Assembly: GCA_024704765.1 (NCBI GenBank)
Contig: JAKMXF010000277.1
Span: 62,001-126,000 of the forward strand
Source: Oopsacas minuta
Lineage: Eukaryota > Animalia > Porifera
DNA: 64,000 bases
Reading direction: 5' to 3'
Shown here in pieces: positions 19,101-39,703 of this stretch. Positions within the stretch are counted from its first letter, which is position 1. Each line of letters starts with the position of its first letter. The translations under genes and the position numbers were made by a program. The notes under the pieces are model-generated. The model was not told the origin of the DNA and did not search any database. It saw only the letters and a list, made by a program, of their open reading frames with translations.

Positions 19101-22100
19101 CTGGGTTCATTAGACCTTGAGATGATCACTGACGTCATTATAGGTCAAATAAAGGATCAGGACACTACGTTAATTTCGAACGACTCTGATTTCTCCTTCT
19201 CCCTCTCAACCACTCCTCTTGATAAGCCTGAAGTGAAGCGGAAGCCTAAGGTAGAGACACGTAGACTAACACGTATGGGTTCTGTATCGCAGCCGCATAT
19301 CTTCAAATCAGACCCAGAAACAGCTCTCCTCTCTGTGAACTTACAGATTGACAGCATTGGTTTGAAAATTTTCCACATGGAAAAGAATATACCAAATGCT
19401 TTGAAGGAAATGGGTGACCTGAATGAATTTCCTATCCCACAGGAAAAGAGTCTAGCTTATTTAGCGATTGTGAATGCTTCCTTGGTTGGAGAGGTAAAGC
19501 CAAATCTCGTTACAGGAATTAATCTTACACTCAATGATATTGTAGTACAGGATAATAGAGTTGAGATGGCCGACAAAATTTCACGTATGATTTCCCGAAG
19601 TATTCTAGTTAAAGATGAACGTCCTCTTCTTGCTATAGAACTGAAACGGCTCTCTAGCGATGACTTAACCATGAGGTTATTCCTATGCAACTTAACAGCT
19701 ATTTTCTCAACAGAATTTCTCATAACAATCGCTCTATTCTTCTGGAAACCTATAGAGAGGGTGTCTCAGATTACAAATGAGGGTCAAGAGAAGGCAAAGC
19801 GCAGAAAGAAGACAAAAGAAATACCACGTAACACTCCCACAGACCTACAAAACAGAATACCAACTTTCCGCCTAAATATAACTGTTAAAAATCCAACAGT
19901 TTTGCTGATAGAAAATACAACTGATAGAAATCCTCGTACTCTTGTAGGTAAGCTAGAACTTTCAGGGATAGTTAAACATGATAAAGGGCTAGGATTCAGC
20001 ACAACATTCACCCTCTCTAATGCTCAACTATACACTTGTTTATACAATACAATCGCCAATCCCTATTCCTACGTCGTAGCTCCATTCGTCATGCATATGA
20101 ACATAAATGGAATCGCAGAAGAAATCCACATTGTAATGGAGAGTCTACAAATCAATCTCACACCATCCACGCTAGCTTTAGTGACTCATATAGCTGAATC
20201 TTTGAAATTCCCTGATAAACATGATCTAGGATACGCACCAATTGATCTATGGGAAGCACACGATACAGAAAAGTATTCTTGGTTCCTTCGATCATCTGAA
20301 TCGATTGATTCCTGGTCTGTTGTTCTTGACAACATAGAAGACAGTTCAACACCAGCATTGAAGACAGAGAGACTGGATATAGAGGTTCGTAGTATTGATT
20401 TTAAACTCGACAGTGAGTATAAAGGTAAAATAACTCCTATCATGCTTATACATGCTTCAGCTGGAGCGGAGATACAAAATTGGAAGACACAGGTAGAAAT
20501 GCTTGCCTCATTTACAGTAGAAGCCTCTTATTTCAACGAAAAGCTCTCAACATGGGAACCTCTCCTCGAGCCAGCACAAAGCCGTACCACAGCCAATTTA
20601 ATACCATTTCGTTTCAAGCTAGAAATGAACACAAGTGACAAAGGATCCACAAGTGACGTAGTGCTAATCAGTGACTCTGACATACAAACACAAGCGATCC
20701 AGGCAGAGTATGCTATCGAGCTAACAGCATTAGATGGTATCAATATAACTGTTTCAAGGGAACTGATTGAGATATTAAGCAAGTACAAAGATGAAATCGA
20801 TTTGGTTAAGAGTAATGTAAAATCTTGGGACAGCACTGCATCAACCGATGAATCTGGAAATTCTGTTTTCGTGATACTGAATGAGTTGTCTATCCCGATT
20901 AAGATCACACTTGATGAAAAGGACATTTTATTTTTCGATCATAAAGAAACATCTAAATCTCGTACAATTAACGACAACACACCATGCCATATATACACTT
21001 CGAATGCTGTCGAAGATTTGGCACAGGCTATTCTTTCGAAACGTGGGAAAGTTAAGGACCACTATATGCACGTGTCTCTTGAGAAGTATCATACAATTCC
21101 ATTCATACCCATCCATCGTACCGGTAATCTACTCTACTTCCTACCACCAACAAAAGATCACTTTTTAGTTGTTGAGATAAATCTGATAAATGGTTATAAA
21201 CAAGTGATTATACGTTCTCCAATGAAAATACGAAACGAATTGGATGTCATTATGGAAATATTCGCCTCACCAATTGATCAGGATGCTTCTGGCCTGACAT
21301 CTGTAGCTACCATACAACCCAAAGAAACATATTACGTTCCATTACACCACACATACAACAATATATTCAGTCTTGCACCACACCAACTAATATACCGACC
21401 TTCTATGTTACGTTTTGGTAGTCATACAAAGTTCTCAGCTCAGACAACAGAATGCATGGTTCACACCGACTCCAGTGTATCACCAAAGGAAGATCCTCCG
21501 TTCAGTTTCACACTTGATGCTACAGAAGACCATTATACTCGTGAGCCACTCAAATTTAAACGAAATTCTGACGGTAACTATCCTCACCATATATTCACAG
21601 CATATGTACCTTCTATCATTCATAACCTGTTGCCTGTTGTTCTGAACTATGAAGTTGAACACTCGAGATTCAAGTCACGAGTCCTCCCAGGCTCTACTTC
21701 TAATATCCTATTCTATTCACCAGATAAATCAACTAGTGTGATACTCACAATCACGTTATATGAAACCGTTTTCCAAGGGAAATTTAGTCAATTAAGTGAC
21801 AATGAAACTTCAAGTTGTAAAATGCAATCACAAGACGGTAAATTATCATTTATCCTAGGAGTGTATGCTGAAACGACTGGCTCACTCCAAATCAAGGTAT
21901 TCGCTGCTTATTGGGTAATAAACAAAACTGGCCTCAATTTACAATATAAAAGTAGTGAATCAGGTTTTAACAAACCTTTAAATCATGAATCAACAGACGA
22001 ACCTATGTTATTCCCATCCACCAGTCTTGGTAGTAAAGTTAAGTTAGCAGTTAGACGGTTAACTTTCGGTAGTACGTCAACAGAATGGTCGAATTCAGTT

Positions 22101-25100
22101 GCGATTGGAGCAGTAGGCAGCGAGAATCTGGTTGAGTCTAACATCCCTGGTGGTTCAGGAGTCTCTTACCAATTCGGTATTAGAATCACAGTATCATCAT
22201 CTTCACTGACAAAAATCGTTATAATAACCCCGTATAATCTTCTTATCAATAACACGAAGCAAGAACTAACGATTCAAGAACAGTTAGTTGATTCCGTTCT
22301 CCTAAAACCAGGAGATTGTACGCCTTTCTACCCAATTGAGGATACATGTAAAATTGTCCCAGATACTTCTGTTAAAGGTGCTGTGCTAGATATCGCGATT
22401 CCTGGTCAGATTCTACTGCAATTTGATGGTGACAATCCTGCTATCCCTGTTGATATCAGCACAAATGTCTCAAGCAATGTTATTACATTTCAATCATATT
22501 ACGATGGTGCTGTTCCATTACAGATCGTGAACTCTCTAAGCGAAGTATTGATTGAGTTTAAACAGAAAGGATGTACTGGAAAATCGAATCTTGTTCCACC
22601 AGGTTTGTTTTGATATATTTATTGGGGTATTGGCTGTAATATCTTGAACAAATATAGGCACATCTCTGAATTATACTTGGGAAGATCCTTCAAAGCCGCA
22701 TGAAGTAGAATGGTGGCCCACGAAACAGGAAAAAGTGAAGACGACTGCATCAGTGAATTTCGACGCTGATGGAAAAGTCAATTTTCCTTTCGGTCTTGAT
22801 ATGAGTATTGTTGTGGAAGGTTCGACGCACTCTTCAAGTACACATGACGATTTTGATGATATTTCTACGGAAGCCTCTATGCTGATGTCTTCTACAAAGT
22901 CTAAAACAAGTATGTACACATTTTTTTCAATTTAATAGGTGTCAATCCACTAGTGTTAGCTGTATACGGTCGTATTTTAATAGTGCTATATTTTTTCACG
23001 AAAACTATGTATTTCTTCAGTCACGAATATTAGAGGTGCAGAGTTATTATGGATCAGTTTTTTGGATGGACTTCAACGTATTTTGCTCATAACAAACAAT
23101 TCAGTTATAGCCAGACACGCAAAGCAAGTACAGAAACGTGAAAAGATAAATTTTAGTTTCGCAATGCTTGTTGAGGAGATTGGCATTTCTCTAATTGATG
23201 CTATTACTCGTACAGAGATTGCTTACATCACTTTAGTTAGTTCTGATACAGTATGGCAATATCTCAAGAATGGAAGGGTGAGTGTTTCCAACGCATTTAC
23301 TGTGCTGACTATATAGTGTAACACACTAAGGTTCCAGTGACCCATAAAATGCGTCCCGTTTCTGAATTCCACTTTGTGGAGGTTGATTTGTATGGGACTA
23401 GGTTGTCTTTCACTCGGTTTCCAGATGTTCCCTGTTTCCACATGCCCTGTTTATGTTACACTGTATAGTCGCCCAGTATCGTATGCTTTTTGTTTTTCTA
23501 TTTTTCCATATCCATTCTACAACCCACAGCAATTCATATTATTAACTGAACAGCTGTATATTTATTAAATACAGCTCTCATAATTATTCTATTTCATTCT
23601 CGTTATTCTAAATATAGCATTAATACTATATCCTGTCACATGTGTGAGCTAACTAATTATTATTCAGATATGGAAAACTATGTCTGGTGAGATAATCAAG
23701 AAACTAGAGTCAGCTTACACGCTAGATCCGAATAGTAATATTGCCAGCAATGAATTGAAAGTAGATTTTCAAAGCATGCAAATACTTGAACCCTACTCTG
23801 GCCATTTAAGAAGAACACATTTTCCAGGACTTTCGCTAGAGTTACAGGTAAGACGTAATTTTCACATGAATACCCCAAAAGATTCAATAATACCCAATTT
23901 AGATTTCATCAAGCCAACTCTACTTTGACATTAAAATAGCTTCAATACAAGTCGACAATCAAATGGCCCATATTCTCTACCCGATTGTCTTTCATTCAGT
24001 CGCTTTACCAACAGATGCCCTGAACTTCGACCCTAAACCATTCCTAGAGGCTAGCCTCATCCTTTTACTCAATAAAAAGATGGGTAAGTATATTGTACTT
24101 TCTACAAATATTTCCTTTTTAAGATTAGTAATGTTTTGCTAGTTTTTACAGTTTAATATTATATCATTCTTATAATGAAATTTTATTCCCTGACTTCCTA
24201 ACTCTTGGAAACTGATCTTTCAATTTCTTTCTCATGATTACAGTCGTACCCGTAAATTTGGACTCTAACGCGAAAAGAGTCTATCCACGATGGTGGAAAT
24301 TGACTGTAATTGCTTACTATAGTGAATTCGATGAACATCCGTTATTTCAAAGTTCTTGTGCAAGAAATGAGTTTTAATTTGGACATTGGATTTATTGAGG
24401 GAGTGATCGGATTATTTGGAGACTTAGAGCAGAGAGAATGGACCACAAAGGAACTTTTTGAATACGATTACAAGAAGGTACGATTTAATATTTATCTTTT
24501 AAATTGCATACAGTCGAACTCGGATACGATTTCCTTCCTCAAAAGTACTTATAGCCACTTCCTCCAACGAGTGTATATTGAATGAGAATTGATTTTTATG
24601 CTATCTCCTAAGGATCTCGGGTTGAATATAAAACTTTGTAGAGAATTCTTTCCTCTCATATCGAGTTCTACTGTACTTATATATTTTTGGTTTGTATATT
24701 CCATATTTGGGCATATTGAATTTTGATATCTCAGGTATTTATATACCAAAACTAATTGTGTCCACAAATTATTTCTATTAATATCCCAGTATTTCATATG
24801 TACTATGTTTATTGGTTAGCCACGACCTACATGTGATAATTACCCATAAATTGCAAACCAATCTTACTTAGAAACCTGATTTATTCAATTATACATTTTA
24901 GCGTCAACATGAACTTCATTGTAATTTCTAATTATTTCTAATGAATATTGTAAAAGCACAATTAGTAGTTATAATATTTCAGCTAAGTATCATTCCTCTC
25001 TTCTCAGTATTCCTCTGATGATGTCTTGTTGTATTACCTTTAGGCGTATTCGTTCCAACATTCTCATATTTATGAGATTTTGTATCGTATTGTGCGAAGC

Positions 25101-28100
25101 ATTCTGGCATAGTTACCGAATTCCCGATTAAGAATGTTACATTATCACCAACTAGTCCAGGCTTTTTTGGCTTTCCTATTGGTGTGGATGTAGACTTTGG
25201 AGATTGTAGTGAGCGTGTATTTTGGTAAGGAGATTGTAGTGAGGGTGTATTATTGCAAGGAGATTGTAGTGAGGGTGTGTTATGGTAAGGAGATTGTAGT
25301 GAGGGTGTGTTATGGTAAGGAGATTGCTGCATTTCTTTTGAAGTTATTGTGGTTACTATTGGTGTTGAAGTTGGTGTTGATGGTAGTGGTGATTTACATA
25401 TATGTGATATGTTAGTATTCGGACTCAACTTTTTTCTAAATATATTAATAAATAAATAATAAATAATTGCTTATTGAGGCATAAAATTGGAAAATTACGT
25501 CGCTGTAATTTGATATTTTGTTTGTTATTGTACAGATTGTATATTAGTATAGTTCTTAACTTGCCTTGGTTCGTTAGTCATAAACTTCATATTGTGGTAG
25601 TTAGAATTTGAAGTTGGTGAAAACGAGCTTTTCCATCCTTTACAATTTGTTGTAACTTGTGAGGAAGGTGTACTGATGGGAGATGAAGATCTATCATTAT
25701 GGCATATTTCTAATGAGCTATTTGGTCTAGAAATATGTTCCTTTATCGTTGATTCTATCGGAGTAGCTGTAGATGAATTGATTTTCAAAATTTTCAGTTG
25801 TGTCCGTTGCCTTGGTTCTATTGTTGTCTTTTGGAGAGGATTCTCATCAGGCATGTTAATGTATTTGGGACACACTCCCATATTATTCATTGACTCCTTT
25901 ATCCGTCTACACTCATATGACAATACTGTAGGCAATTTGTCTTCTATTTTTTCCAGAAATTCTATAACAAAATTGTAAATATTTATTTCAAAACTATCAT
26001 ATATTTCGTACTATTCACTTACTATAGACAGTTTGTAGCATTGTCTTTCTTTCATATTCCATTCTCTGATATCAATTCCTGTTTGCAAGTTTTTTAGATT
26101 GATATTCTTTACAGAAATTTTCTTTTATACTTGAGGAAATTTGCATTTCATATTGTTAGCATTAGCTAGTTAGATGATAATTATAGAATGAGTTAATTAC
26201 CATACATAGAGTTCATTATTTGGGTACACTTTACTTTCATAATTACTATACATACGTATACGTAAAAACATGTAACTTATTGAAATATCAAATGCTTACT
26301 TGTGTTCCTACGTAGATTATCAATGCTAGTATTACAGAATTAGAGGGCTCTGTAACCGCATCTCAAGGTAGTAAACATTTTATAGACTATCTGCACTTAT
26401 CGCCGCTCAAGATTAATCTTAGTTTCAGTCTACAACATGGGAGTGAGCCAGTAGATAAACGTCTCGCTAGAAAGGTTTGTTTATTCGTGTTTGTATTTTT
26501 CACTCCGTTTCTACAGGCGCCGTTTGTGGAGGGTATACTGTTACACGAACAAATGCATTTAGTATTTGAATCGAGTGGTTAGTTCTATTTTAGTTGCTAT
26601 CTTATTGCACCATCATTGCCATATGTGTGCTATATAAGCTTGCATAAACTTGGAAAAACATTCAGGTAATTTCCTCTACGTAATATTATATAATATTCTA
26701 GTAAAATCAACAGGCAGGCGCATATACTTAGAAATATTTGTACCCACAAGAATATCTCTAAGTATTTTGTCGATTTACAGGTTGTCACTTCGAAAGCATT
26801 CAGAGTTCTCCTCGATTCACTCGGAGTGCCCGGATCAGCTGACAAGGTTCTACTACAACTCAAGTACTTAGAAATACAGCATAGAGCAATGACTCAGCGA
26901 CAGATTACGCAAACATTCATCAAGCACTATAAACAAGCCGCTCTGACTCAAATCTATAAAGTTTGTTCTCGCAATTTCACTTTTTGAATTGTGTAGATTA
27001 TGTATGCATTTTTTGCCTTATGCAAATCGTATATCATTGAAATTGGAATTTTTCTTAGATATTACTTGGCCTCGATGTAATAGGAAATCCATTAGCATTG
27101 ATTCGACAGATAGGCGGCGGAGCTAAAGATTTATTCTACGAACCTTACCAAGGAGCTATTGAAGGGCCTGAGGCATTTATTGTTGGAGTTGGACATGGTA
27201 TCACTAGTTTAGCTGGTAGTACAGTTGGTGGTGTAGCTGGAGCAGTGTCAAAGATAACTTCAACTGTTGGGAAAGGTAGTTGGGGATTTAAAAACTGTAC
27301 TTCACTACTTGCTAGTGTCGGGAGTGTCGGCACAGGGCAAATTTTAAGAATATAGTACAGTTTCTATTGAAACACAACCATTTTATAGGTTTAGCTGCTC
27401 TTACCTTTGACACACGCTTTCAGAGATCAAGGCAGAGACAAGACATCAAAGCTCGGACAGCTGGAGAAGAGTTTTTCAGGGGTGGAAAGAGTTTCGCTAC
27501 CGGACTCTTCGAAGGAGTTACAGGTAAGTTTGACTACCCCCATAAATAACAAACCTGTGAAAATTTGTATAGTGCAAAACTATGCAGTTTTAACATTTTC
27601 CCCTCTTTCAGAGCTTCGCTTAAGTTGTGGCAAACTTTCCTACGTTTTTGGGTACGAAATTCCTAAATTTCCTCCTCATTTTTCCCTATACTCTCTATAT
27701 CCTATAATCTACCAAAATACAGAAATAAATATTTTCTAGTGTTTTGTTCGAAATAATTCTAGTTTCTTTACTGTGCTCTTTCCACCATACAGCACACATA
27801 TATATGTATAGGAAAGGGTTATTAGATGTCCTGCAAAGCGATGTGCACTCGTGTCATCTTTCCCAACGATGACTTTTATCTTTTTCTTTGCTTTCTCGAA
27901 TACTCCTTGCATATTCGTATTTGTAATTAACCCATTTTCGTTAAAGGCTGTGTTAAATGGCATATTTACAGAGTCTGGTATCCATTCAGCTTGAAAATCC
28001 TCCACAGGACGTATGTCAATTACGACACATCCTTTTTTACCAACTTTCCCACTATGCAAACCTTGATTTAATAATTCCACCATTTCTTGCCCAGAAATAG

Positions 28101-31100
28101 AGAACGTCTTATTGTTTTTAATATGGTCAAGTTTCTGTTTCGGCTTGTCTTCCAACGGCACGGGGTTGGTCATATTCAAAGGTACGATAGCGTATTGCCT
28201 CTGTGGGCCAGTTGCAGGCGTTTTCGAAGCTAAATATTCCGCTTCTTCCATGCATTTGTCAATATTTATATCTGGTAAATCTGAAAAGAGAAGAATGCAA
28301 TCATTGAACCCAAAAGTTAACAGATTCGATTTCAATTGCCAAAGTATACCCAAACCAATAAATAGTGGAAATGTACTGTTATTGACCAGAAGTTTATTCC
28401 AGATTAAAAAGATCTTTTCAAGTGGGAATACATGTGTGAAAACCGTTAGAAACCATGGAATAGCGTACAACTCCGGTTGAAATCCAATATCGAATAGATG
28501 GTTGTATAATTGCGGTGCATGGAAGGCAATTAATTGTGAGAAGACAGCTAGATATTCCTGCATAACAGGCGAATTGTCTTTGAGGAAGAAATTGTGAACA
28601 TATTTGTCAATAAAATTTAGCATAGAAGCGTATGCAATTGCCTCGCGATGGAAGTTTACTACTAGGAATGTGGCAGCTAAGGAATCTAACCCTTGCCAGT
28701 ATACCAACTCAATTTTTGTGTTCAGAAAAGCTTTGAGAAGTCTTTTCAGCTTTGAATGCCCTTCTGAGGATGCGAGAAACTCGTTGTACTGATGACAACG
28801 AGGGATGTCCACCTCAATTTGCCTGTCAATTGGTGATTCGCTTTCTTTATCAACTTCATCGTAGAGTTTTTGATAGTTAGATTTGACATCAAGCAAAGCT
28901 GCCCAGATTTGAGATCGAAACAATGGACATATATCCTTTTTGCTTTCGAGTTTGATCTGATCCTTGGTATGAGGATAACCTACATAGTTTAGTATCGTTA
29001 ATATTCATGGTATAAGATTACCTTGGATTATTTATGATTATAAGACGGAAATTCCATGCTAAAACCATGCACAAATGTCTAGTTTCTAACCACCTTCGAA
29101 ATTGGCAAAAAAAAAATCACTAATTTGAAATTACTCACTTTCCAACAATCTTCTGAACAGTATCACCCTATGAAATTGATACTCTACATCTTTCTCCTTG
29201 ATTGAAGCAGGCAGTCCAATAGAATCCTTAGGTATTTGTGGTGGAATAGATTGATCTGTTAAGATCAATAGCGGATAGAAATCAGGTGTTGTTAAGTGAT
29301 TCAGCCTCTCGTTGAGCTTATCCATACTGATCGTAGTATGTTGATCTATAAGGATTCAGATGGAATTCTGTTAGCAGTCTAGACCCTTTCTGTACATGTA
29401 GCTCATATACCAATTTTAACAGTCTGTGGACCCCCTGCTGTCGTCCGAGGGGTCCATGTACCCCATGTTGGGAACCGCTGGTCTATACCATAACACTTGT
29501 TTTCGTTATCTTAACTAACCTGTATACAGCATCAATATTTCCTTTTCCTTCCCGAAACTTTCTTTATTTTTGGTGATAACTTGAGGTAGCGAGCAGATTG
29601 GAGCTTTTGACTGTACCAAGCCGTTCTTTTCCAGTTCATGCAATAGATCACCACCTGCTAGAGACCACAGGAAGAACACCTCGTGTATGTCACGTTCCCC
29701 TAGTAAACTTTTAAAACTATCTACTTCTCCATTCTGGCCTTGTATATCAGTTAACATTTGCGTGAAAATGCTGATATCAAGCCTTTGTGTTCGATTCTGC
29801 GTTGATTCAAAACATGTTGGGATTAGTGGTAAATTCGGTGAGGGCTTAATTGTATCTTTTAGGAACGGATGTTCTAAAAGATCCCTTGGACATGGCCGCA
29901 TGCTCGCATCTGGGTTCAAACATTTGACCAGAAAATCGGTTATTTCCTGTGGTATTGAGAAGAAGAGCGTTGGTGCTTGCTGTGTGTCGAATAAGAATTG
30001 AGGTATTGACATGTTTTTGACGGTTGTAAGGTGTAGAATGCGTTTGCAGATGTTTGTGAGTGAATTTCTCCGTGGAAGGTCGGACCATATTTGTTTTCCA
30101 ACAAGAGCTTCCATTAATATAATGCCTAAGATAGATTTTATCAAAAAATTCAGAATATTTAAATCTCTAATTATTACTTACCCAAACTCCATATATCGAT
30201 ATTAGTATTCTTTCTGTATCTTTCCTTCGCTTCTTGACCTTCTCTAATGAGCTCAGGCGGCCAATACACAGGAATACCAATTGGAAATTTAACATATTCA
30301 CCGTATTCAGTTACATAATACATACCGAAATTCGACATCTTTATTTCACCATTACTCGTAAGCTGTACGTTTTGACTTGATAAATTCCTGTTGATCAATC
30401 CAAGTTCATTCATATGCACCAGGCCAGATACAATGCTGTATCCCAGCCGTCTTACTAATGCAAGGTCACAGGAAAAGTCTCTCAGCACATCTTTGTTTTC
30501 TAAACATCTTTGATGATACTCACTGACTATCAACATTCTATTCTGTTTACATCTCTGTATCCAAATGTATTGACATAGATTTGGGTGTCTGATGCCTTTT
30601 AGCTTTTGAAAACGACCCACAATGTTGATACTTGTAGGTACGAGTGATACTCCATTTACAGGGCCACGATTGATTAGAGCATTTGTCGCAAAGAATGATA
30701 ATATTCCAATATCAGCATCTCCATATAAGGACATTGCTGAAAATTGTGCAAAAATAATGTTTGTTAAATTAGGTAAAAAGATTAGTCAGGGTTTACGGAT
30801 AACCCTTTGGATGAAATCCATTCCTTTTATCAGTGATCCCAACCTGGGGTTCATGGACTCCTTGGTGGTTCACAGACGACAGCAGATGGCCGAAGGATCT
30901 CAAAATCTGCATTGCAGTGTATGGAAGAGGATCGACAGAATGTGCTAAAATTCGTATAGGGCTCAATGGGTGAAACAGGTTGGGGCCGTATATGATGTAA
31001 TATCTATCATCATATCATGGGATTTATCAAGTGTATGTTCTATTTCTCAAACACTTCCCTAGAGTAGGTGAAATGGATGGAGTCATGTGCACACTTTCGA

Positions 31101-34100
31101 CCCTGCATTTTTATAACCTACCATGAATTGTTAAATTAACATCGAATCTATTATGAACGAGCTACATTTTGTTGGTCCTGAGGTTGTATAATAATTCTAT
31201 GTTCATTGTCTTGACTTATGGTTGAATAATTATCATCATGGTTAATTAAGTTTGCAATATATTCACAATCTTGGCTTGCCTTAAAACATGTACCATATGG
31301 TTTCAAAGTCAATTTACCTACACAAACACAATCACCATTATACATAATTGCCATTAACTTCTAAGCTTTGAACTACAAACATGTAAGAGTATAGCAGTGC
31401 TTTCATCTCGTAACTTATTCAATTCTTACTTCTTCTGACTCATTATATATGTAGTTAATTTGCATTGTAAGAAACTTGCATTTTCTATTAGGTGTCGTGT
31501 ATCAGCCAGTGAAAGGAGTAACTGAAGAAGGTGCAGTTGGATTAGTAAAAGGAATTGGTAAAGGTTTGATCGGAGTTGTAACCAGGCCACTCGGAGGCGG
31601 CGTGGATCTATTAACAGCTACATTTGGAAGTCTCCAAAAAGCTGTCAGTGGTGATAAAGTACTGGTAAAGAAACGCCACCCACGGTTTATCGGGCAAGAT
31701 AAAGTTATATCAGTAAGTTATGTTTTATCCTGTGTTACGCCAGTGTATTTAGCAAACTGATTTATATACAGTTTGGGCTGACTAATACAAGGCGGATATC
31801 ATTTCCACTACGTTTTACCTATAATGCCTAGGCATGGTTTGTGATATCTGCTTACGAACGGCAGTATCCACTTATGTACAAAACACAAGCCTGATTATAG
31901 CACTTAACATAGTGTGCTAGCTCTGTCAAGATTCTTGCTTGCAATTCAGTTAAATCAGTTAGATTTCAGCTGTTCCCAAACATTATCACCCGTGGACACC
32001 TATGCGGCTATGCCAATTTTGGGACCCTCTTGATCTCCCATATACTGCACCCCTTGCCGTTGTCCAGGGGGTCCATATGCCCCAGGTTGTGAATCGCTGA
32101 GCTAGAAGTATCATGATAAAATAATCATGTGTACAGTTCCATAAAAAAAAAATTTGAATACAATTAATTCTTAGTAATACTGTTTTCGTGTTGATGTTCC
32201 CTCTCTTCTTTGTGCGAATGTAGGTTTTCTTCGAAATTCAATTCAATTTCGTTTGTTTCACCTAATATAATTGAATTACCTTTTTCGGTCAATTTATCCA
32301 TTGTCTTATTCCAGTCGTCAATCTGTAGAATATTTCTATCTTCTTTCATAAACATTACAGTATCATTTAGACTCTTTTTCATATTTTTTTCCCAAACCAG
32401 ATCATCGATAATATCTGTTACAACTACATTTGGTTCAACCACGTAATCGACATCTACAGGTACAATCATTTCCTGTTGAACAAATAGTTGATTATCCCCT
32501 TCATATTGGTAATGTTCAATCAGCATAATAGCAGGACTCGATAACAGGAAAACAACTCCCATAATCAGGATAAATATAGCACCCTTCACATTATCATCTT
32601 TCGTAGATTTTATAAACATCATTGATGGGACGATAAAGCTTAATATCGCTCCAGCATAACCACCAGTAACATTCAAAATAACTCCAACATTGGGCACCAT
32701 CATTGCGATAATCATTGACCCAAAAATAATCAGGAGGGTAATGAATATAAAATAGAATTTGGGAATGAAAATATCTGACCTTAGTTGCCCTCTTGTAAAA
32801 ACGAAAGAGTAAATACATGATCGCATGGGTAATATCACCATAGGGTAAGATATGATTACACTTATGCAGAATGCGAGTCGAAGTATTTGGTGTAAAAACG
32901 AAGTGGAGAGGTTACGAAATATATCTGTACCGATTAATTCGCTTACAAATGTGAAGTACCCGAAAATTCCAACGGTAGAGTATATAATACAAACTAGTAG
33001 CATCGCTCCTATTACTAATGGTTTGACGCCACTTACGCCTTTCATGCTATCTGGAAAGGTTTCGAGGTATATCAACATTTGCGATTGACAGGAAAAACCG
33101 GTTAAAATGATCGGCATGCATATGAAAACTCCTTTCAAATCGAATAACTTCACATTGGGATGAAATACATTTGTTCGACCAAAATAAAATGCTTCAATAA
33201 AAAGATAAATAATGAAAACAGCATACGTCAACAGGGAAAATACACTGAATGGCACCAAGCTTGATGCATCTCGTATAAGGCAAAGCGGTAAGATAATAAA
33301 TACTGCGACAAATGTGACAACTTTTTCACGAAATAAAATCCCTTCTTCAATGCTTGGAAAATTTGCCTTCAAAATTGTTGGTATAATATCTCCAATAATT
33401 ACAAATGATGCAACTCCAATGCCAAATATAAACGCTATGATACAAGTTGCAATGAAATATTTTCCAAATCGACCATAGATGTTTTCTGCAGTTGTCTCGT
33501 AGGAATTTGTCGAAGTAATAAGTGCTGCCTTTAGTAGAAATATTGATGATTCCACACTCATATATCCTGCGATAAATATCAATATTACTCCGAGTATACA
33601 ACCACATTGTTCAATGCAATATGGCATAGCAAGCATAGGAACCCCTAACATAGAATTGCCAAGGTTTAATACGTAGGGTAATGTATAAGAGTCGTACGAC
33701 ATAATGTATTGGTGATTGTTGCGAGCAGTCAGTGGATTTTGCCTTACTTTTGTATGTTTGCTATTGAATTTCTCGTTCATATGGTTTTGTAAGAATTATA
33801 ATCTTTTTGTACAACCAACTATAAAGTACATTGTTCTATCCGCACCTAAATCATTGATATGAAATTTGTTAATGTATATTTGGGACATTTTTGTATGAAA
33901 GTATATTTTGTATAACCCCGTTATCACCATCATTATTATCAGCATCTTATTGGAACTACAAATATGATCTAATTATGACTTTTATATTCCATTCAGAAAA
34001 TCTACATTTTTGTTTATTTGTCCAATTAATTACGTAACAATTATGTATGCACTAAGCAACTAGATTTCAGTGATAATTATGTGTGAGATCAGACGTAGAA

Positions 34101-37100
34101 ATTTTGTACATTTGTGTATGTAATTATGCTCTCAATGACTGGAGCTTGTAACAATTAATGAGCCGAATATGCAAAACAGATATATATGCCCTGTTTGGTG
34201 TAAAAAATAGCGCTGTTATCATCATTTCCTTGGTTTTTAGCTAATATTGCATTCAAGCCATAATCACTCGTAGATTGCACTACGTCTCTGCTTAACAATA
34301 GAACGAAACACCATATAACCTTTCTGTTGTATTCTACATAGAGTTTATTCTCCAGAGATCGTCTATAGAAAACCTAATTTATTCATTATTGTAATCATAT
34401 ACAAACAGTTTTATAGGCATTTGAACCCATAATACTTCAATGTAATTGTTATGGACCCATTATTCAACATAGTCCTGTATATACTAGTTCACGAATTTGT
34501 CTGTTCGTTATCGAATTTTTCCATTACGTTTTGCTCCGTAACATACGTTTTGGTTTAATTTTAATTATATATTACACAACTAAATATACCTCAGCAATTC
34601 GTAAGGAATATCCAATCAACCCATCACTAGTATTCGTTTTATAATGATGTGAATAAATTGTGGTTAATTAATAAAAGTTGTCATCTCAAGTTTACCCTGC
34701 ATAAAGGCTACATCATGTGTGGTCTATGTATTGCCTTTCCCATCACCCAGTGTATTTACTGCTGATATATATAGGTGTGCAATCGCTTAGTATAAATATA
34801 GTAATAATTTCCATTATTCAAAAGTGAATTTATCTATACTTCCATTTACCTACAATAGCACTGCATTATTGGTGTATAGCCCAGTCAATTTGAAAGTCTT
34901 TTCACAACACAAAATGACACATAATCCAAGTACAAGCGCTTCAGCTCGCTCAGAATTCCAAGTTGGTGGAAAATTCCGTTTAGTCCGTAAGATCGGCAGC
35001 GGTTCATTCGGTGATATATATCTCGGCGTGAATATAACAAATGGAGAAGAAGTTGCCGTAAAGTTAGAGTCTTTGAAGGCTAGACACCCTCAGTTACTAT
35101 ATGAGTCTAAATTATACAAGATACTACAGGGAGGAGTTGGTATTCCACATATTAGATGGTGAGTTTATGAAATATGTATTCAATTATACATTATTGAGTG
35201 ATTTATGACTGAATTCTGAAAGTTCTTTGTATACAGACCCCATCCCAATTCTCCCTAATTACTCCATTATTCCCCAGGTATGGCCAAGAAAAAGACTACA
35301 ATGTCCTAGTGATGGATCTGTTAGGCCCTAGTCTAGAAGATCTCTTCAATTTCTGCTCACGTCGCTTCACAATGAAGACAGTCCTTATGCTAGCTGACCA
35401 GATGATCGGTCGTGTCGAGTATGTACATAATAAGAATTTTATTCACAGAGATATCAAGCCTGATAACTTCCTTATGGGGATAGGTCGACACTGTAACAAA
35501 CTGTTTTTGATTGATTTCGGTTTGGCAAAGAAATACCGAGATACACGTACAAGACAACATATACCATATCGAGAGGATAAGAATCTTACTGGCACAGCTA
35601 GATATGCTTCTATCAACGCTCATTTGGGTAAGGAGTATTGTGAATATTTGAGTCTTCATTTTATTCCTACGTTACTATGGTAACTAATATAGACTGATTA
35701 ATTATGACGTCAATACGTTAAATATCCAATAAATACAGTATATTTAATATATTGTTTACACAAAGTATGAATTGTATGCGAATCTTGTAATAATGAATTG
35801 CAGCATCAAATTATGTAAATTCTCTATTCAGGTATTGAACAGAGTCGGAGAGATGACATGGAGAGTTTAGGCTATGTTCTAATGTATTTCAATCGTTCAT
35901 CTCTACCATGGCAAGGCCTGAAGGCTGCTACAAAGAAACAGAAATATGATAAAATATCTGAGAAAAAGATGTCTACACCTGTTGAAGTTCTCTGTAAAGG
36001 ATTCCCAGCAGAATTCGCTATGTACCTCAACTACTGCCGAGGATTAAGGTGAGGAAAACCGCAATTTGTCTGTAACCGAGTTTAGTGATACATGTTTTGA
36101 CAAAAATGATCCCTATATGCTTATTAGCCATTTAACCATGGATGATGGTTTTTGTTATTTATGTTATACTAATCCACCTCCAACCAAACGAGTAGTATCC
36201 CAAATGACCTAGAACAACATCCAAGCAGATATACTAACTCCACCATCTATGGTTAATATCTAAAAGCATATACCATTTTATCATGAAACGTTCGGTTTAG
36301 TATACGATTTCTAACTAAATTACCTTGAATGTAACATCTGTATTGATTATCAACCAGCAGTTTTTTTGAGATAATTATTAAAGGCTGATGACATATAAAT
36401 CATTCTTAGTAGAGTTAGATTTAATATAAAGGATGACTTAAATGTAAAGTCACTAATAGAATTCTGGTTAAATGTTGTCAATTATATCATTACTATGACA
36501 GCTAATTGCTGATATTAATAAGGCTATGATCCTATCAATTTGGACACTTTCCAGGAATTGATTCATGTCCAACACAGATAGAACATTCAGTTAACTTTCA
36601 AAGTGCCAAATTGTCTTGGTAGATTGTGTTCTAATTGTTTCCATGATATTTTTGCCAATTTGAAATTAGCCAAAACATTAATTACAAGTGCTTCAGTTTA
36701 TCCAAATATGGTGAAATATTGTGTACTTTATTTGTACACTTTTATGATGACGCATTCAATATATTTTGATGATTAATTTCTTTTGATAAGTGTCCTAGAG
36801 TCTAGACGTGTAATTTTGCTTCGAGAACAATTGTTCTATCGAATCGTAAGTATCGAACACTTCCTTGATTCAGATGGTAAAATACTCTAGCATCACTAAT
36901 ATCGGAGTAAAATTATTGAATTCGAAATACCACGCGTTGAATACAGTGAAACCTCCTATAGGCTATGAAATCGGGGAACTTCTGGAAACGAAATGAAATG
37001 AAATATAGCGAATTCCTAGTCTTGTATAAATTGACGTCCACACAGGGAAACGGGGTAGCATTTTCGGCCTCCCTGGTTACAATGTATATATACAATATAA

Positions 37101-39168
37101 CGCGTATTGATTATATACTATTTCTCCTTAGATTTGAAGAAGCCCCTGACTACATGTATCTCCGTCAACTATTCCGTATTCTATTCCGTACACTCAACCA
37201 CCAATACGACTACACATTTGATTGGACAATGTTGAAACAAAAAGCAACCGCACAAAGTACATCGAGCTCCAACTTGACACCCGGTATACCACCTTCAACA
37301 GGAATTCCACTGATGCCAACTTCGACAATACCATGTGGCGTCGGGACAAGCGCAAAGCCCCCAGCCTCCCCAGCGATGCAGGCAACACCAGAAGATCTGA
37401 GACGGGATAGAATGAAATTCGATAAGGATTCATTAAGTAAAAAGATCTAAGAAATTTAAATAAAAGTACTTTTTACTGCCTTCTCTCTCATACACACAAA
37501 ACACACAGTATAAAGACCTTCAATTTTCAATTGACTTTCGATCATGAAATGTGCATTTGTTCTGCACGAATACATTGTTAATTACCCCCTAGTTAATTAC
37601 TGTTTACATTCTCCTATACCCTCACCTATCAACGCTAACTGTCTATCTTATTATGTTAGAGAAACTTACTTTGACTATTTGCTAATTAAACGTCTCAACA
37701 CACGCACACACATGGTCATAATTCGACCAGTTGCTACCATGAAGACATTTGTGCCACATACAGAGGTGCCGGATGAATACAAATCATAAGCCATATCTAC
37801 TATATACCCATTTGAAATATGAATATTTAAATCAAATCCATGAAAATCCATAAATTTCATGGTTCTGATGGTCCAAGGACTTTAGAGAATCCAAATCCAT
37901 CCGGCCTCTCTGGCCACGGACGACAGCAGGGGTCCAGAGGATCTCAAAATTTGTGTTACGCTATGGGAAGGGTTAAATTTGTATTCACAAGGTGAACACG
38001 GTTGTAAACATTCGGTTTAAGAAATGGCATTTTCGGTGAAATATCCGCGAGAATTATTTTACGATCTCTTCACGTAGGTTTAATCTTACCAACATATAGC
38101 GGACGAATTGAGCCATTTCCTTGTATATCCGCTATAATTAAGGTATAGCTATTGCATTATAGTTCTACAATATATGTAAATTTGTCGATATATCAAAATT
38201 CAGCTGACATGTCTTCCCTTCCTCCCACATTTCGTTCCACCACCCAATCACTATAATATTCTGTAATTATTGCATTATTCATGTGCACGATGTCTCTAAC
38301 TGAGTTTCAATATGGTTACGTGGTTATTAGCTTTTGAAACATGTGTAGTTTCAGGTGATTTCTATGTGTTAGTAATTAATAATTGCTTGCTGATTAGAGT
38401 AAGTGATTTGATTGCAGATTTACTTGTTAACGGGGTTTGACGTATTCTATTGTTCTTATTATTATTGCATTTGCAAGTTATTGATTGTATACGTACGTCT
38501 ATGTATGCTGACCTATACTACATATGCTCCAGAGATCGATCTTAGAATTTCAATTTTCAGTTTCCTTCAACTGTACTCTGCCCCTGAGAACTTTCGAAAT
38601 CGTTGGATTCTTGAGAAATTCACATTTTGTCTTGCTATCTAGTATTATCTACAATTTGTTTAGTGATACTAATATATTTCCTGTTTTATATGCATAAACC
38701 TTTGGAATTTAATTTTTGACATATTTTCAAAATTCAATTAATTCCCCCTTCCCCCTCTAGGTCTTCGACTTACAATCAGCACTAGGTAATTTCATTCTGA
38801 ATGACATAGAAAACGCTAAATACCTCCGTACACTCGTATACAAAGGCCATCTACTCATAGAAGAGTCTAAAAACATAGCAATTTTTATTGTAACAAACAA
38901 ATTATTAATTAAAGCCGAGCGAAAGAACTTCGACCCATTGAACCCGTGGAAAGATGAAGCTATATACCCGTTCGAGGAGATTACTCATGAGATGGACTTA
39001 TCGCTAGATGGGAAGAAAACAATATTAATTCTTCATATTGTGAAACATAGAACTTTGTTTTCACACGGTAAACCACGTGTAATGATATCAACATCTGATC
39101 ACAAATCAGCTGATATATTCGCGGCACAGTTTAACCAGGCTCTCGCGGAATTTAACAGCTCCTATTAG
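4156..39168 (+). CDS. VPS13: VPS13A/C-type bridge-like lipid transfer protein, 22 exons, about 4,020 aa; host of five nested genes
   Basis: Chorein-N start [15 protein letters not shown]...IPWKNLY; C-terminal ATG2_C-like GLDVIGNP...FYEPYQGA...[10 protein letters not shown] and a final PH-like exon. Exons: 4156-4407, 4580-4768, 5125-5262, 5366-5584, 5737-6041, 6211-6730, 6799-7155, 7234-7525, 7583-7764, 7835-8092, 15597-22602, 22658-22909, 23021-23277, 23668-23847, 23903-24083, 24323-24477, 26316-26474, 26781-26960, 27059-27275, 27389-27523, 31492-31712, 38761-39168. All junctions are phase-compatible and sum to 12,063 nt (4,021 codons). Confidence 0.92.
4800..4885. mobile_element. TA-targeting MITE, family B (TIR CAGTCAACTCCCG-like)
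   Basis: cagtcaattcc ... cgggagttgactg followed by TA. The internal gaagctcaaggaaccgcgataattacttc is the reverse complement of the segment near 39480 and 49620. Lies in VPS13 intron 2. Confidence 0.6.
8155..8243 (-). mobile_element. hAT (Charlie/Buster-like) MITE, family A, degenerate internally deleted copy
   Basis: caaccgttcctaaccattttcacccgtggacc ... aagggtccat ... aagaatcgct matches the ends of the copies at 31967 and 50497. Confidence 0.55.
8382..14764 (-). CDS. Full-length ABCA-subfamily lipid transporter (ABCA3-like), multi-exon, nested antisense in VPS13 intron 8093-15596
   Basis: N-terminus [26 protein letters not shown]1: [40 protein letters not shown]2: [39 protein letters not shown]-terminal [13 protein letters not shown]. 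Many short GT-AG introns. Confidence 0.93.
24511..24673. mobile_element. TA-flanked MITE (Tc1/mariner/pogo-type ends), 163 bp
   Basis: TA|cagtcgaactcggatacga ... tcatatcgagttctactg|TA: imperfect TIRs of about 18 bp with TA on both sides. Confidence 0.65.
24979..26062 (-). CDS. Orphan S/T/P-rich protein, about 297 aa, three exons, nested antisense in VPS13 intron 24478-26315
   Basis: Exons 26062-26023, 25961-25565 and 25435-24979 join in frame (894 nt) through a 61-nt GT-AG intron and a 129-nt GC-AG intron (AG|GCAAGT). No domain recognised. The 5' end is uncertain. Confidence 0.55.
25199..25327. repeat. 30-bp tandem repeat, about 4.3 copies, encoding [10 protein letters not shown]-like decapeptides on the minus strand
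   Basis: ggagattgtagtgagggtgtgttatggtaa is repeated head-to-tail with few substitutions and no spacers. Confidence 0.95.
27736..30734 (-). CDS. TBCK: TBC1-domain-containing pseudokinase TBCK (kinase-like + TBC + rhodanese), 4 exons, nested antisense in VPS13 intron 27524-31491
   Basis: Start [16 protein letters not shown]...[19 protein letters not shown]; [16 protein letters not shown]...YWQGLDSL...[11 protein letters not shown]; rhodanese [10 protein letters not shown]. Exons 30734-30182, 30125-29520, 29345-29139, 28979-27736 (2,610 nt, about 869 aa). Confidence 0.93.
29385..29480 (-). mobile_element. hAT MITE family A, partial, inside TBCK intron 2
   Basis: ...ggacccc ctgctgtcgtccgagg ggtccatgtaccccatgttgggaaccgctg|gtctatac: one intact TIR followed by an NNNTANNN flank. 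Confidence 0.7.
30831..30990 (+). mobile_element. hAT MITE family A, about 100 bp upstream of the TBCK start codon
   Basis: cagtgatcccaacctggggttcatggactcc ... gacgacagcag ... ggatctcaaaat ... ggtgaaacaggttgggg shares blocks with the copies at 37913 and 45268. Confidence 0.7.
31967..32099 (-). mobile_element. hAT MITE family A
   Basis: cagctgttcccaaac ... ccccaggttgtgaatcgctg: both TIRs present, degenerate. Confidence 0.7.
32164..33780 (-). CDS. SLC38A10: SLC38A10-like amino-acid transporter (AAAP family), intronless, nested antisense in the last VPS13 intron
   Basis: [46 protein letters not shown] and YPMVILPMR match the SLC38A10 transmembrane core; 538 aa. Confidence 0.8.
   Translation of the reverse strand: MNEKFNSKHTKVRQNPLTARNNHQYIMSYDSYTLPYVLNLGNSMLGVPMLAMPYCIEQCGCILGVILIFIAGYMSVESSIFLLKAALITSTNSYETTAENIYGRFGKYFIATCIIAFIFGIGVASFVIIGDIIPTILKANFPSIEEGILFREKVVTFVAVFIILPLCLIRDASSLVPFSVFSLLTYAVFIIYLFIEAFYFGRTNVFHPNVKLFDLKGVFICMPIILTGFSCQSQMLIYLETFPDSMKGVSGVKPLVIGAMLLVCIIYSTVGIFGYFTFVSELIGTDIFRNLSTSFLHQILRLAFCISVIISYPMVILPMRSCIYSFVFTRGQLRSDIFIPKFYFIFITLLIIFGSMIIAMMVPNVGVILNVTGGYAGAILSFIVPSMMFIKSTKDDNVKGAIFILIMGVVFLLSSPAIMLIEHYQYEGDNQLFVQQEMIVPVDVDYVVEPNVVVTDIIDDLVWEKNMKKSLNDTVMFMKEDRNILQIDDWNKTMDKLTEKGNSIILGETNEIELNFEENLHSHKEEREHQHENSITKN
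34914..37450 (+). CDS. CSNK1A1: Casein kinase 1 alpha, 4 exons, nested on the same strand in the last VPS13 intron (31713-38760)
   Basis: Near-identical to CK1-alpha motifs ([14 protein letters not shown]...[72 protein letters not shown]). Exons 34914-35158, 35278-35627, 35832-36048, 37132-37450. Confidence 0.96.
37913..38005 (+). mobile_element. hAT MITE family A, internal fragment
   Basis: ccacggacgacagcaggggtccagaggatctcaaaatttgtg matches the internal blocks at 30860-30910 and 45290-45330. Confidence 0.55.
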
Positions 39169-39405
39169 TATAATTTTCCCTAATTATTAATAATTCTTTA
39201 GTTTAGTTTAGTATTGCTATAATTGTGCTTGTATATACTTAGCTGACTTTCGAATCTAGGAATTATTTCTATATTAATTATACTTGTGTTTGGGTGTCTA
39301 TATGTCAAAATAATTGGAAATTGTGTGTCTTATATTTTGGGTTACGTCATGAAGATTATATATTCTCAGAAACTTGGTGTAAGAACTTTGAGTAGAAATG
39401 AGCTA

Positions 39406-39534
39406 CTGTCAACTCCCCTTATGTCAATTGTACAAATATGGTCCCAAACCGTCCAAGTAACATATATTCCATCAGTTATATCGAAGTAATAATTATCACG
39501 GTCCCTTGAGCTTCGATGTAACGTGAGGTGATAG
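39406..39534. mobile_element. TA-targeting MITE family B
   Basis: TA|ctgtcaactcc ... atatggtcccaaaccgtccaag ... ttatatcgaagtaat ... cccttgagcttcgatgtaacgtgaggtgatag|TA; near-identical core at 49575-49669. Confidence 0.65.
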
Positions 39535-39703
39535 TATTTTGAAGAACTCTAGCCTCTACTTGTTACCATAGTGTTTCTGACTGCCTTTTACTGAAATATC
39601 TCCTAATTATTGTCCCATTTTTCAGATCACAAATGAATAGTATTGTATACAGCAATGTTTACTAAATTTATTTAATACTTAGCAATCCGATCACTCAATA
39701 GGA

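Follow-up and report, generated by a model that had tools for sequence, protein, structure and literature searches.

A complete gene for casein kinase 1 alpha (CK1-alpha) lies on the same strand within the last intron of VPS13 in the glass sponge Oopsacas minuta. Conserved splice sites, an in-frame TAG and a gapless alignment with homologues all point to this arrangement, which a preliminary description of this DNA had proposed. We consider it likely that the locus is an ordinary case of same-strand nesting that has been stable in evolution, with an autonomous CK1-alpha and with VPS13 mRNA produced by plain cis-splicing. The window, i.e. the whole stretch of DNA analysed here, comprises 64,000 nucleotides, and all positions below refer to it. 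Its proteins match GenBank Oopsacas minuta proteins at 100%, one of them annotated as 'VPS13C [Oopsacas minuta]', and the locus is part of contig JAKMXF010000277.1 of assembly GCA_024704765.1. The + strand carries every exon of VPS13 and CK1. The relevant features are these.

31492-31712, + strand: penultimate VPS13 coding exon (...GVVYQPVKG...DKVIS), recognized by its sequence and by 44% identity to mammalian VPS13C residues 3489-3561
31713-38760, + strand: last VPS13 intron, 7,048 nt, phase 0, with two complete genes inside
32164-33780, - strand: amino-acid transporter gene, single exon, 538-aa ORF (Pfam Aa_trans, 2.4e-42)
34657-65, 34716-25 and 34791-99, + strand: putative CK1 promoter with ATTGTGGTT, TGTGTGGTCT and TATAAATAT (TATA), respectively, invariant in seven loci
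34914-35158, + strand: CK1-alpha exon 1, ATG at 34914, donor gtgagt, following intron in phase 2 (Pfam Pkinase)
35278-35627, + strand: CK1-alpha exon 2, next intron in phase 1 (Pkinase, 2.6e-15), 100% amino-acid identity in six loci
35832-36048, + strand: CK1-alpha exon 3, next intron in phase 2, 100% amino-acid identity in six loci
37132-37450, + strand: CK1-alpha exon 4, stop TAA at 37448-50, in agreement with the GenBank model
37451-37690, + strand: conserved CK1 3'UTR ending in TGCTAATTAAA, with ATTAAA at 37685-90 (MAFFT alignment of six loci)
38312-38398, + strand: 'first exon' of GenBank model LOD99_3586, whose product P0027 begins with MVTWLL…LLIR, the model continuing at 38761; probably an annotation artefact
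38741-38760, + strand: host acceptor, pyrimidine tract and TAG, with tag/GT at the same codon and the in-frame TAG in 6/6 related loci
38761-39168, + strand: VPS13 terminal exon, C-terminal domain (putatively PH-like), 135 codons and TAG (39166-39168) (Pfam VPS13_C)

The host gene extends from 4156 to 39168 on the + strand. It opens with a Pfam VPS13_N match at 4156-4512, one exon of 2,362 codons carries VPS13_M and VPS13_VAB, and its exons from 22074 to 31709 give colinear tblastn hits. Having an N-terminal chorein region, a middle/VAB part and a C-terminal domain in one colinear gene, the host can be assigned to VPS13 on its domain content. The penultimate exon displays 91-99% amino-acid identity across six related loci, where a GTAAGT or GTGAGT donor is found at the same codon. 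In the window, this exon ends at 31712 with a complete codon (...GTTATATCA), followed by gtaagt from 31713, and the intron is thus in phase 0. At the other end, the acceptor ttcccccttccccctctag is followed by GTC, the exon starting at 38761; because of an in-frame TAG at 38758-38760, the terminal ORF opens exactly at the acceptor. The homologous intron of the relatives measures 6,742-7,292 nt. The host intron contains ten sense-strand AATAAA/ATTAAA hexamers. An Rfam search of it (outside 37196-37236) gave no match, and no convincing copies were found of a possible dispersed repeat at 31960-32130. Pairing of the intron ends, which would bring donor and acceptor together, was considered and rejected, the duplex energies being no better than those of shuffled sequences in six loci (z from -1.1 to +1.8).

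CK1-alpha shares this intron with a second gene. The amino-acid transporter is antisense to VPS13 and stands head-to-head with CK1; relatives carry transporter ORFs, 57-68% identical, in the same place. The preliminary description made no mention of it. The corresponding GenBank model has only 179 aa, as against the 538-aa ORF, and an exact-protein look-up of the 538-aa transporter returned no record.

The three introns of the guest are all of the GT..AG type, 119, 204 and 1083 nt long, and their phases, read directly from the sequence, are 2, 1 and 2 against phase 0 of the host, exactly as had been stated before. When exons 2 and 3 were searched separately against PDB, CK1 isoform alpha was the best match in both cases, with 251 bits versus 209 for delta (exon 2) and 147 bits versus 129 for delta (exon 3), which by sequence similarity identifies the guest kinase as the alpha isoform. 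On the human chain, the matches run over residues 79-194 (exon 2) and 196-266 (exon 3), so that a single residue remains for the split codon. GenBank has a CK1 model of 376 aa with the same limits.

CK1-alpha also looks autonomous, because a TATA box, upstream motifs, a 3'UTR and an ATTAAA signal are all conserved, their function being suggested by this conservation. The motifs ATTGTGGTT, TGTGTGGTCT and TATAAATAT follow in the same order in 7/7 loci; the two upstream ones are of TGTGGT type. The TATA box is found 78-153 nt upstream of the CK1 ATG, and the TATA box together with the two upstream motifs at 78-257 nt, in DNA that is otherwise saturated with changes (mean column identity 0.41). 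Downstream of the gene, the poly(A) hexamer lies 230-273 nt from the stop codon in every locus. A hairpin GTGCA-N7-TGCAC at 37551-67 is conserved within the 3'UTR, past which conservation ceases after a CA-rich stretch. An AATAAA at 37459 is found in the window only and not in the relatives. The distance from the CK1 poly(A) signal to the host acceptor is 1.07 kb.

These traits suggest how the locus may work. The 7-kb phase-0 last intron of VPS13 contains a head-to-head gene pair, the antisense transporter and the sense CK1-alpha, the latter probably being a transcription unit of its own with a putative TATA-box promoter and ATTAAA poly(A) signal. Judging from conservation and homology, full-length VPS13 mRNA would be formed by plain cis-splicing of 31712 to 38761. 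When host transcription reads through the guest, the short guest introns (119, 204 and 1083 nt) most likely pair with their own nearby sites, so that the host donor would be left with only the host acceptor. A part of the host transcripts would probably terminate at the poly(A) site of CK1, or gain CK1 exons and be degraded.

CK1 mRNA might instead be cut out of the VPS13 pre-mRNA, as in an operon placed inside an intron: a leader would be trans-spliced to an acceptor shortly before the ATG and cleavage would occur at ATTAAA, each transcript yielding either CK1 or VPS13. Spliced-leader trans-splicing does exist in glass sponges (PMC10282587), and spliced-leader addition to CK1 is possible, because in every locus a pyrimidine-rich tract followed by AG precedes the CK1 ATG by 18-50 nt; such addition would fit other models too. 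In the window, AGs occur at 34857-58 and 34878-79; as the preliminary description had noted, neither shares the frame of the ATG, the offsets being 55 and 34 nt. Against an origin of CK1 from the host transcript, the invariant TATA box and the two upstream motifs, standing in saturated DNA, point to a promoter belonging to CK1 itself, and the head-to-head position relative to the transporter is the usual layout of divergent promoters. A downstream gene of a spliced-leader operon is expected to have no promoter of its own, whereas TATAAATAT and the two motifs, to which we ascribe promoter function, are present in 7/7 loci. We therefore regard the operon model as unlikely. Similarly little credence is given to a regulatory variant, according to which the guest poly(A) site or exons would switch VPS13 to a PH-less form or a decay target, the CK1 promoter tuning full-length VPS13, or CK1 would be carved from the host transcript by trans-splicing. 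If such a switch were true, a regulated fraction of the VPS13 pre-mRNAs would stop in the guest or be spliced into it, the PH-less product being comparable to the mammalian short isoforms, and CK1 promoter activity would set the amount of full-length, membrane-targeted VPS13.

The preferred reading, plain cis-splicing around an autonomous guest, depends on whether the segment 38761-39168 belongs to VPS13; had it been unconnected with 31712, CK1-alpha would lie downstream of the host. This point was examined comparatively, and a VPS13_C match, the conserved acceptor and the missing start codon all indicate that the segment is part of VPS13. The match to Pfam VPS13_C covers 38761-39165 (3e-7, 30.8 bits versus a cut-off of 21). 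Amino-acid identity of the exon to its relatives is 71-75%, starting at residue 1. Codon positions 1 and 2 are 84-87% identical versus 44-56% at position 3, a coding pattern, and at both edges nucleotide identity, which is 0.3-0.5 within the intron, climbs to 0.72-0.85 on the exon side. The conservation begins exactly at the conserved acceptor, and the exon does not supply a start codon, no Met occurring before residue 78. VPS13 proteins of an insect and a fungus span the 31712/38761 join gaplessly, with no residue missing: on the Cimex protein the penultimate exon reaches residue 3106 and the terminal one, aligned over 3108-3153, starts at 3107, and in the fungal protein the former ends at 3032 and the latter starts at 3033. 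A full-library profile search with the terminal exon returned one relative's exon ORF and one weak unrelated match, with no transcript-derived protein spanning the join, and a PDB sequence profile search with the same exon gave no match. Its AlphaFold model is poor (pLDDT 52), with strands and, after them, a helix at the C-terminus; all of the ten nearest Atlas clusters are PH-like, which is a lead only. Since the terminal exon lacks a start codon, begins at a conserved acceptor edge and aligns gaplessly with homologues, and since the exons are colinear, the position of CK1-alpha inside VPS13 rather than downstream of it, and with it the join of 31712 to 38761, is supported, indirectly, by conservation and homology.

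Public annotation presents the region differently. GenBank splits O. minuta VPS13 into at least three models, one of them a piece of 2,736 aa without both ends, and its LOD99_3586 (P0027, 164 aa, 'hypothetical protein') is the last VPS13 exon given as a separate gene. If this were correct, VPS13 would end near 31712 without a PH domain and CK1 would lie between two genes. The GenBank model, which joins 38312-38398 to 38761, speaks for such a reading, as does the existence of mammalian VPS13C isoforms ending shortly before the PH domain (P0010). However, none of the six related loci shows a match to 38312-38398, the supposed first exon, between CK1 and the acceptor, and the conserved ORF lacks a start codon, beginning instead at a conserved acceptor immediately behind an in-frame stop. 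Distant VPS13 proteins that cross the join without a gap also contradict it. Moreover, RNA was mapped for the O. minuta annotation by TopHat with -I 5000 (PMC10280926); the pipeline was blind to introns longer than 5 kb, and the public annotation misses the nesting for this reason. A separate small gene at 38761-39168 is thus very improbable.

The preliminary description also held that the junction phases make any splicing error between host and guest shift the frame. All single mis-splices indeed give early stops. The rule fails for CK1 exons 2 and 3 taken together (567 nt, 3 x 189), whose joint inclusion keeps the host frame but carries stops in that frame. One could see in the mismatch (host 0; guest 2, 1, 2) a selected safeguard by which nonsense-mediated decay destroys every host-guest mis-splice, and the early stops and the identical phases in all relatives would agree with this. 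However, with textbook phase frequencies, three guest introns without a single phase-0 one are expected in about 1 in 7 to 1 in 3 cases (~0.13-0.3). Because all relatives share the CK1 introns, their phases count as one observation, one inherited state, and not as several. In this AT-rich DNA any wrong frame runs into a stop after no more than about 20 codons, chimeras that stay in frame would be equally harmful or more, and the frame-preserving pair of exons 2 and 3 would leave the supposed design incomplete. We find selection for mismatched phases highly unlikely; the 2/1/2 phases are probably inherited CK1 features and coincidental with respect to the host.

Nor does the shared strand set the locus apart as strongly as had been supposed. 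In human, antisense cases make up about 63% of the nested genes, leaving about 37% on the same strand (PMC3192792), and the statement that same-strand nesting is much rarer was overstated. The further claim that strand and phases call for some special mechanism is not supported either: the phases accord with chance, nesting is common in glass sponges, the guest appears to have a conserved promoter and poly(A) signal to itself, and ten sense-strand hexamers lie in the intron anyway.

The arrangement is conserved. Gene order, splice sites and exon edges are the same in six loci, which come from five assemblies of other glass sponges. In a more distant relative (L009), the penultimate exon, the donor and the antisense transporter are kept, the locus sequence ending before CK1. 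An assembly error that misplaced CK1 and the transporter between two VPS13 exons is extremely unlikely, as the same order recurs in these six loci of five independent assemblies and four runs of one study, presumably DNA, contain 83-99% of the words of 31400-39300, introns included.

Nested genes are common in glass sponges, and their layout is conserved between these sponges (microsynteny); 2,432 nested genes (12.4%) were reported in Aphrocallistes vastus, whereas the annotation of O. minuta lists no more than 83 (PMC10282587). Like those, the present case has a complete gene in an intron of another one, belongs to a compact hexactinellid genome, is conserved in layout between glass sponges and was missed by automatic O. 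minuta annotation. In contrast to that report, the guest here is multi-exon and same-strand, and it occupies the last intron of its host together with an antisense gene; the A. vastus paper gives no strand breakdown of nested genes and no description of the VPS13/CK1 locus.

With the same-strand nested genes of human and Drosophila the locus shares a guest carrying its own, here putative, promoter and poly(A) site in a host intron. Host transcripts there are subject to interference by exonisation, premature polyadenylation and intron retention (PMC3192792). The same side products would be expected in the sponge, which, unlike mammals, performs spliced-leader trans-splicing. Short isoforms of mammalian VPS13A and VPS13C resemble the sponge situation in that the transcript can end shortly before the PH-coding part and then gives a PH-less protein. 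They differ in that the gene itself provides the alternative terminal exon, and at another exon border (P0010, from mammalian VPS13C, departs from the long form about 17 residues past the sponge intron position), whereas a PH-less sponge product would arise only as a hypothetical by-product of the guest poly(A) site. Spliced-leader operons of nematodes, tunicates and flatworms likewise combine same-strand genes, an acceptor-like AG before the downstream ATG and a spliced-leader organism, but the sponge guest lies within an intron and not past the 3' end of the upstream gene, and it carries a conserved, putative TATA-box promoter.

The locus by itself does not reveal a new mechanism. Nesting of this kind is already known in glass sponges, and VPS13/CK1-alpha is a further case. 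The split VPS13, the probably spurious LOD99_3586 and the shortened transporter nevertheless matter, as the O. minuta genome paper argues from gene presence and absence. For the study of nested genes, the locus offers a clean and deeply conserved test case of a host transcript reading through a complete same-strand gene, the sense guest having three introns as well as a conserved poly(A) signal, in an early-branching animal whose introns are short and which performs spliced-leader trans-splicing.

The last intron of VPS13 (7,048 nt) contains an autonomous-looking gene on the sense strand, casein kinase 1 alpha (CK1-alpha). Direct reading of the sequence bore out all coordinates and phases of the preliminary description (host intron 0; CK1-alpha introns 2, 1 and 2).

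Features of the VPS13 locus
8382-14764, minus strand: ABCA-type transporter gene in another VPS13 intron, same place in relatives
27736-30734, minus strand: TBCK-like gene (kinase, RabGAP-TBC and rhodanese) in another VPS13 intron, same place in relatives
31712, plus strand: exon end at the host donor, ...GTT ATA TCA/gtaagt, complete codon at the end (sequence reading)
32164-33780, minus strand: single-exon amino-acid transporter inside CK1-alpha's host intron (Aa_trans, 2e-42, Pfam)
34657-34665: CK1-alpha upstream element 1, ATTGTGGTT, invariant in 7/7 loci
34716-34725: CK1-alpha upstream element 2, TGTGTGGTCT, invariant in 7/7 loci
34791: putative CK1-alpha TATA box, TATAAATAT, invariant in 7/7 loci
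34914-35158, plus strand: CK1-alpha exon 1 (sequence reading; Pkinase, Pfam)
35278-35627, plus strand: CK1-alpha exon 2 (sequence reading; Pkinase, Pfam; PDB match)
35832-36048, plus strand: CK1-alpha exon 3 (sequence reading; PDB match)
37132-37450, plus strand: CK1-alpha exon 4 (sequence reading)
37685-37690: putative CK1-alpha 3' signal, TGCTAATTAAA, at the end of the conserved 240 nt, CA-rich stretch next
38761, plus strand: first exon base after the host acceptor, ttcccccttccccctctag, then GTC TTC GAC (sequence reading)

The host is recognized from both ends, by Pfam matches to VPS13_N at 4156-4512 and to VPS13_C at 38761-39165 (3e-7, 30.8 bits; cut-off 21 bits). Two of its parts match GenBank proteins with 100% identity: the 2,362-codon ORF at 15525-22613 corresponds to [quoted passage not shown] (P0001), and the terminal exon to "hypothetical protein LOD99_3586 [Oopsacas minuta]" (JAKMXF010000277.1, GCA_024704765.1). 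These matches identify the window as O. minuta, a glass sponge. The frame of this exon runs from 38761 to a TAG at 39166-68. Since the acceptor TAG (38758-60) is an in-frame stop, the splice site itself marks the opening of the frame.

CK1-alpha is interrupted by introns of 119, 204 and 1,083 nt, all GT..AG, and the GenBank model (376 residues) has the same limits as the gene read from the sequence. Matched exon by exon against solved structures (PDB), exons 2 and 3 fit CK1 isoform alpha best (251 bits versus 209 for delta, and 147 versus 129). On the human chain they correspond to residues 79-194 and 196-266, and the single residue in between accounts for the codon split by the intron.

The preliminary description makes the nesting depend on whether the exon at 38761 is joined to 31712. 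The four sequencing runs matching the locus come from one study and none is recorded as RNA; as they contain even the introns, they are presumably DNA. Six homologous loci were found in five other glass-sponge assemblies (ENA) via the transporter ORF. All six share the order penultimate VPS13 exon, antisense transporter, CK1-alpha exons 1-4 (on the VPS13 strand), terminal VPS13 exon and receptor phosphatase gene, with exon ends at identical residues. The host donor, GTAAGT or GTGAGT, follows the same codon in every locus, and the acceptor is a pyrimidine tract followed by tag/GT at the same codon, its TAG in frame; no methionine precedes residue 78 of the terminal exon. Precisely at each of the two edges, the nucleotide identity of these loci to the window changes abruptly, from 0.3-0.5 on the intron side to 0.72-0.85 on the exon side, and codon positions 1 and 2 are 84-87% identical versus 44-56% for position 3. 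Cimex VPS13 aligns to the penultimate exon up to residue 3106 and to the terminal exon from 3107, a fungal VPS13 up to 3032 and from 3033; the residues being consecutive, the two exons adjoin without a gap. Mammalian and insect VPS13 are colinear with plus-strand exons from 22074 to 31709, and their mapping found no VPS13-like sequence between 31713 and 34800. These five indirect, comparative lines (order, splice sites, identity step, gapless homologues, colinearity) agree with the nesting originally proposed, and we consider it highly probable that CK1-alpha lies within VPS13. The layout has persisted in lineages that share only 66-74% identity in VPS13.

GenBank treats the terminal exon as a separate gene, LOD99_3586, whose model starts with a 29-codon exon at 38312-38398. 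This first exon, however, has a counterpart in no relative, and the split annotation is explained by the mapping of O. minuta RNA with TopHat -I 5000 (PMC10280926), by which a 7,048-nt intron could not be found. GenBank breaks VPS13 into models at 15525-24700 and 38312-39168. P0001 (2,736 aa) begins at the Met inside the large exon and ends in intron sequence read after 24585, LOD99_3586 (164 aa) consists of the terminal exon plus the unsupported first exon, and both lack the N-terminal chorein exons from 4156.

The amino-acid transporter, absent from the preliminary description, is head-to-head with CK1-alpha. Its ORF has 538 codons (57-68% identical in relatives), of which GenBank annotates 179 residues (32164-32703). 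In the most distant relative found (ERZ20067936), whose VPS13 is 60% identical, the penultimate exon with its GTAAGT donor and the antisense transporter are retained. A Logan contig (SRR29297748) also carries a transporter; over its last ~120 residues this shows full identity, and the contig probably comes from the same species.

The DNA between the divergent transporter and CK1-alpha start codons is saturated between species (mean column identity 0.41), and despite this three elements, of which the TATA box lies 78-153 nt before the CK1-alpha ATG, are invariant and keep their order in all seven loci. From this conservation we read them as CK1-alpha's own promoter. TGTGGT, which forms the core of RUNX-type binding sites, occurs in both elements upstream of the TATA box. 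Midway between the start codons, at 34372-34400, is another conserved block, AAACCTAATT.ATTCATTATTGTAATCATAT. Downstream, conservation continues 240 nt past the CK1-alpha stop and collapses after a CA-rich stretch; we take this segment as the putative 3'UTR and the hexamer at 37685-90, which lies 1.07 kb upstream of the host acceptor, as the poly(A) signal. Among the compared loci, only that of O. minuta has the AATAAA at 37459. The 3'UTR hairpin GTGCA-N7-TGCAC (37551-37567) is kept in all loci and gave no Rfam match. Each locus also has pyrimidine tracts followed by AG 18-50 nt upstream of the ATG, which would allow the addition of a spliced leader; glass sponges are known to trans-splice (PMC10282587).

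Host polymerases would transcribe through the guest, whose short introns would pair with their own nearby sites, so that host donor would meet host acceptor. The mean O. minuta intron of 341 bp (PMC10280926) fits splicing by intron definition. Part of the host transcripts may be lost at the guest poly(A) site or by CK1-alpha exon inclusion and decay, as has been reported for nested genes in humans (PMC3192792). Sense-strand AATAAA/ATTAAA hexamers number 10 in the last intron and 35 in the host gene, so reading past them is routine for VPS13; the one at 37685 is the sole conserved one. The VPS13 3'UTR and gap to the next gene (39169-39703; 539 nt) contain neither hexamer and are poorly conserved, so the host's own signal is not obvious. 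Base-pairing between the host-intron ends, which might approximate the splice sites, did not exceed shuffled controls. We regard the whole explanation, nesting plus these steps, as likely, and no more than that because we infer the steps. That VPS13 C-terminal isoforms are under the control of the guest's processing signals, or that CK1-alpha is carved from host transcripts, seems improbable.

The two AGs upstream of the CK1-alpha ATG are indeed out of frame. It had also been claimed that any mis-splice shifts the frame, but exons 2 and 3 together measure 567 nt, a multiple of three, although that cassette meets host-frame stops after 17 codons. The phase mismatch itself does not carry weight: by our arithmetic, with textbook or equal phase frequencies, in about 13-30% of cases three introns would all avoid phase 0, the relatives share these introns by descent and add no replication, and in this AT-rich DNA a wrong frame of any kind soon meets a stop. 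Same-strand cases are the minority among nested genes, but not "much rarer": the antisense share of human nested genes is ~63%, a figure cited in PMC3192792. By our reading, four of the five guests in VPS13 are antisense. Nesting is a genome-wide feature in glass sponges, with 2,432 nested genes (12.4%) in A. vastus, and the O. minuta annotation was noted to under-call them (PMC10282587).

The locus works like, and belongs to, the class of same-strand nested genes, here with CK1-alpha as guest and a VPS13A/C-type protein as host. Set against P0009 and P0011, other mammalian VPS13C sequences, a mammalian VPS13C isoform (P0010) ends 22 residues past the point matching the end of the sponge penultimate exon, hence without the PH domain; its exon border and the sponge intron position are ~17 residues apart. 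Same-strand nesting as a kind of arrangement is already known. Neither the O. minuta nor the A. vastus genome paper (PMC10280926, PMC10282587) describes the CK1-alpha/VPS13 locus, its conservation or the annotation error.
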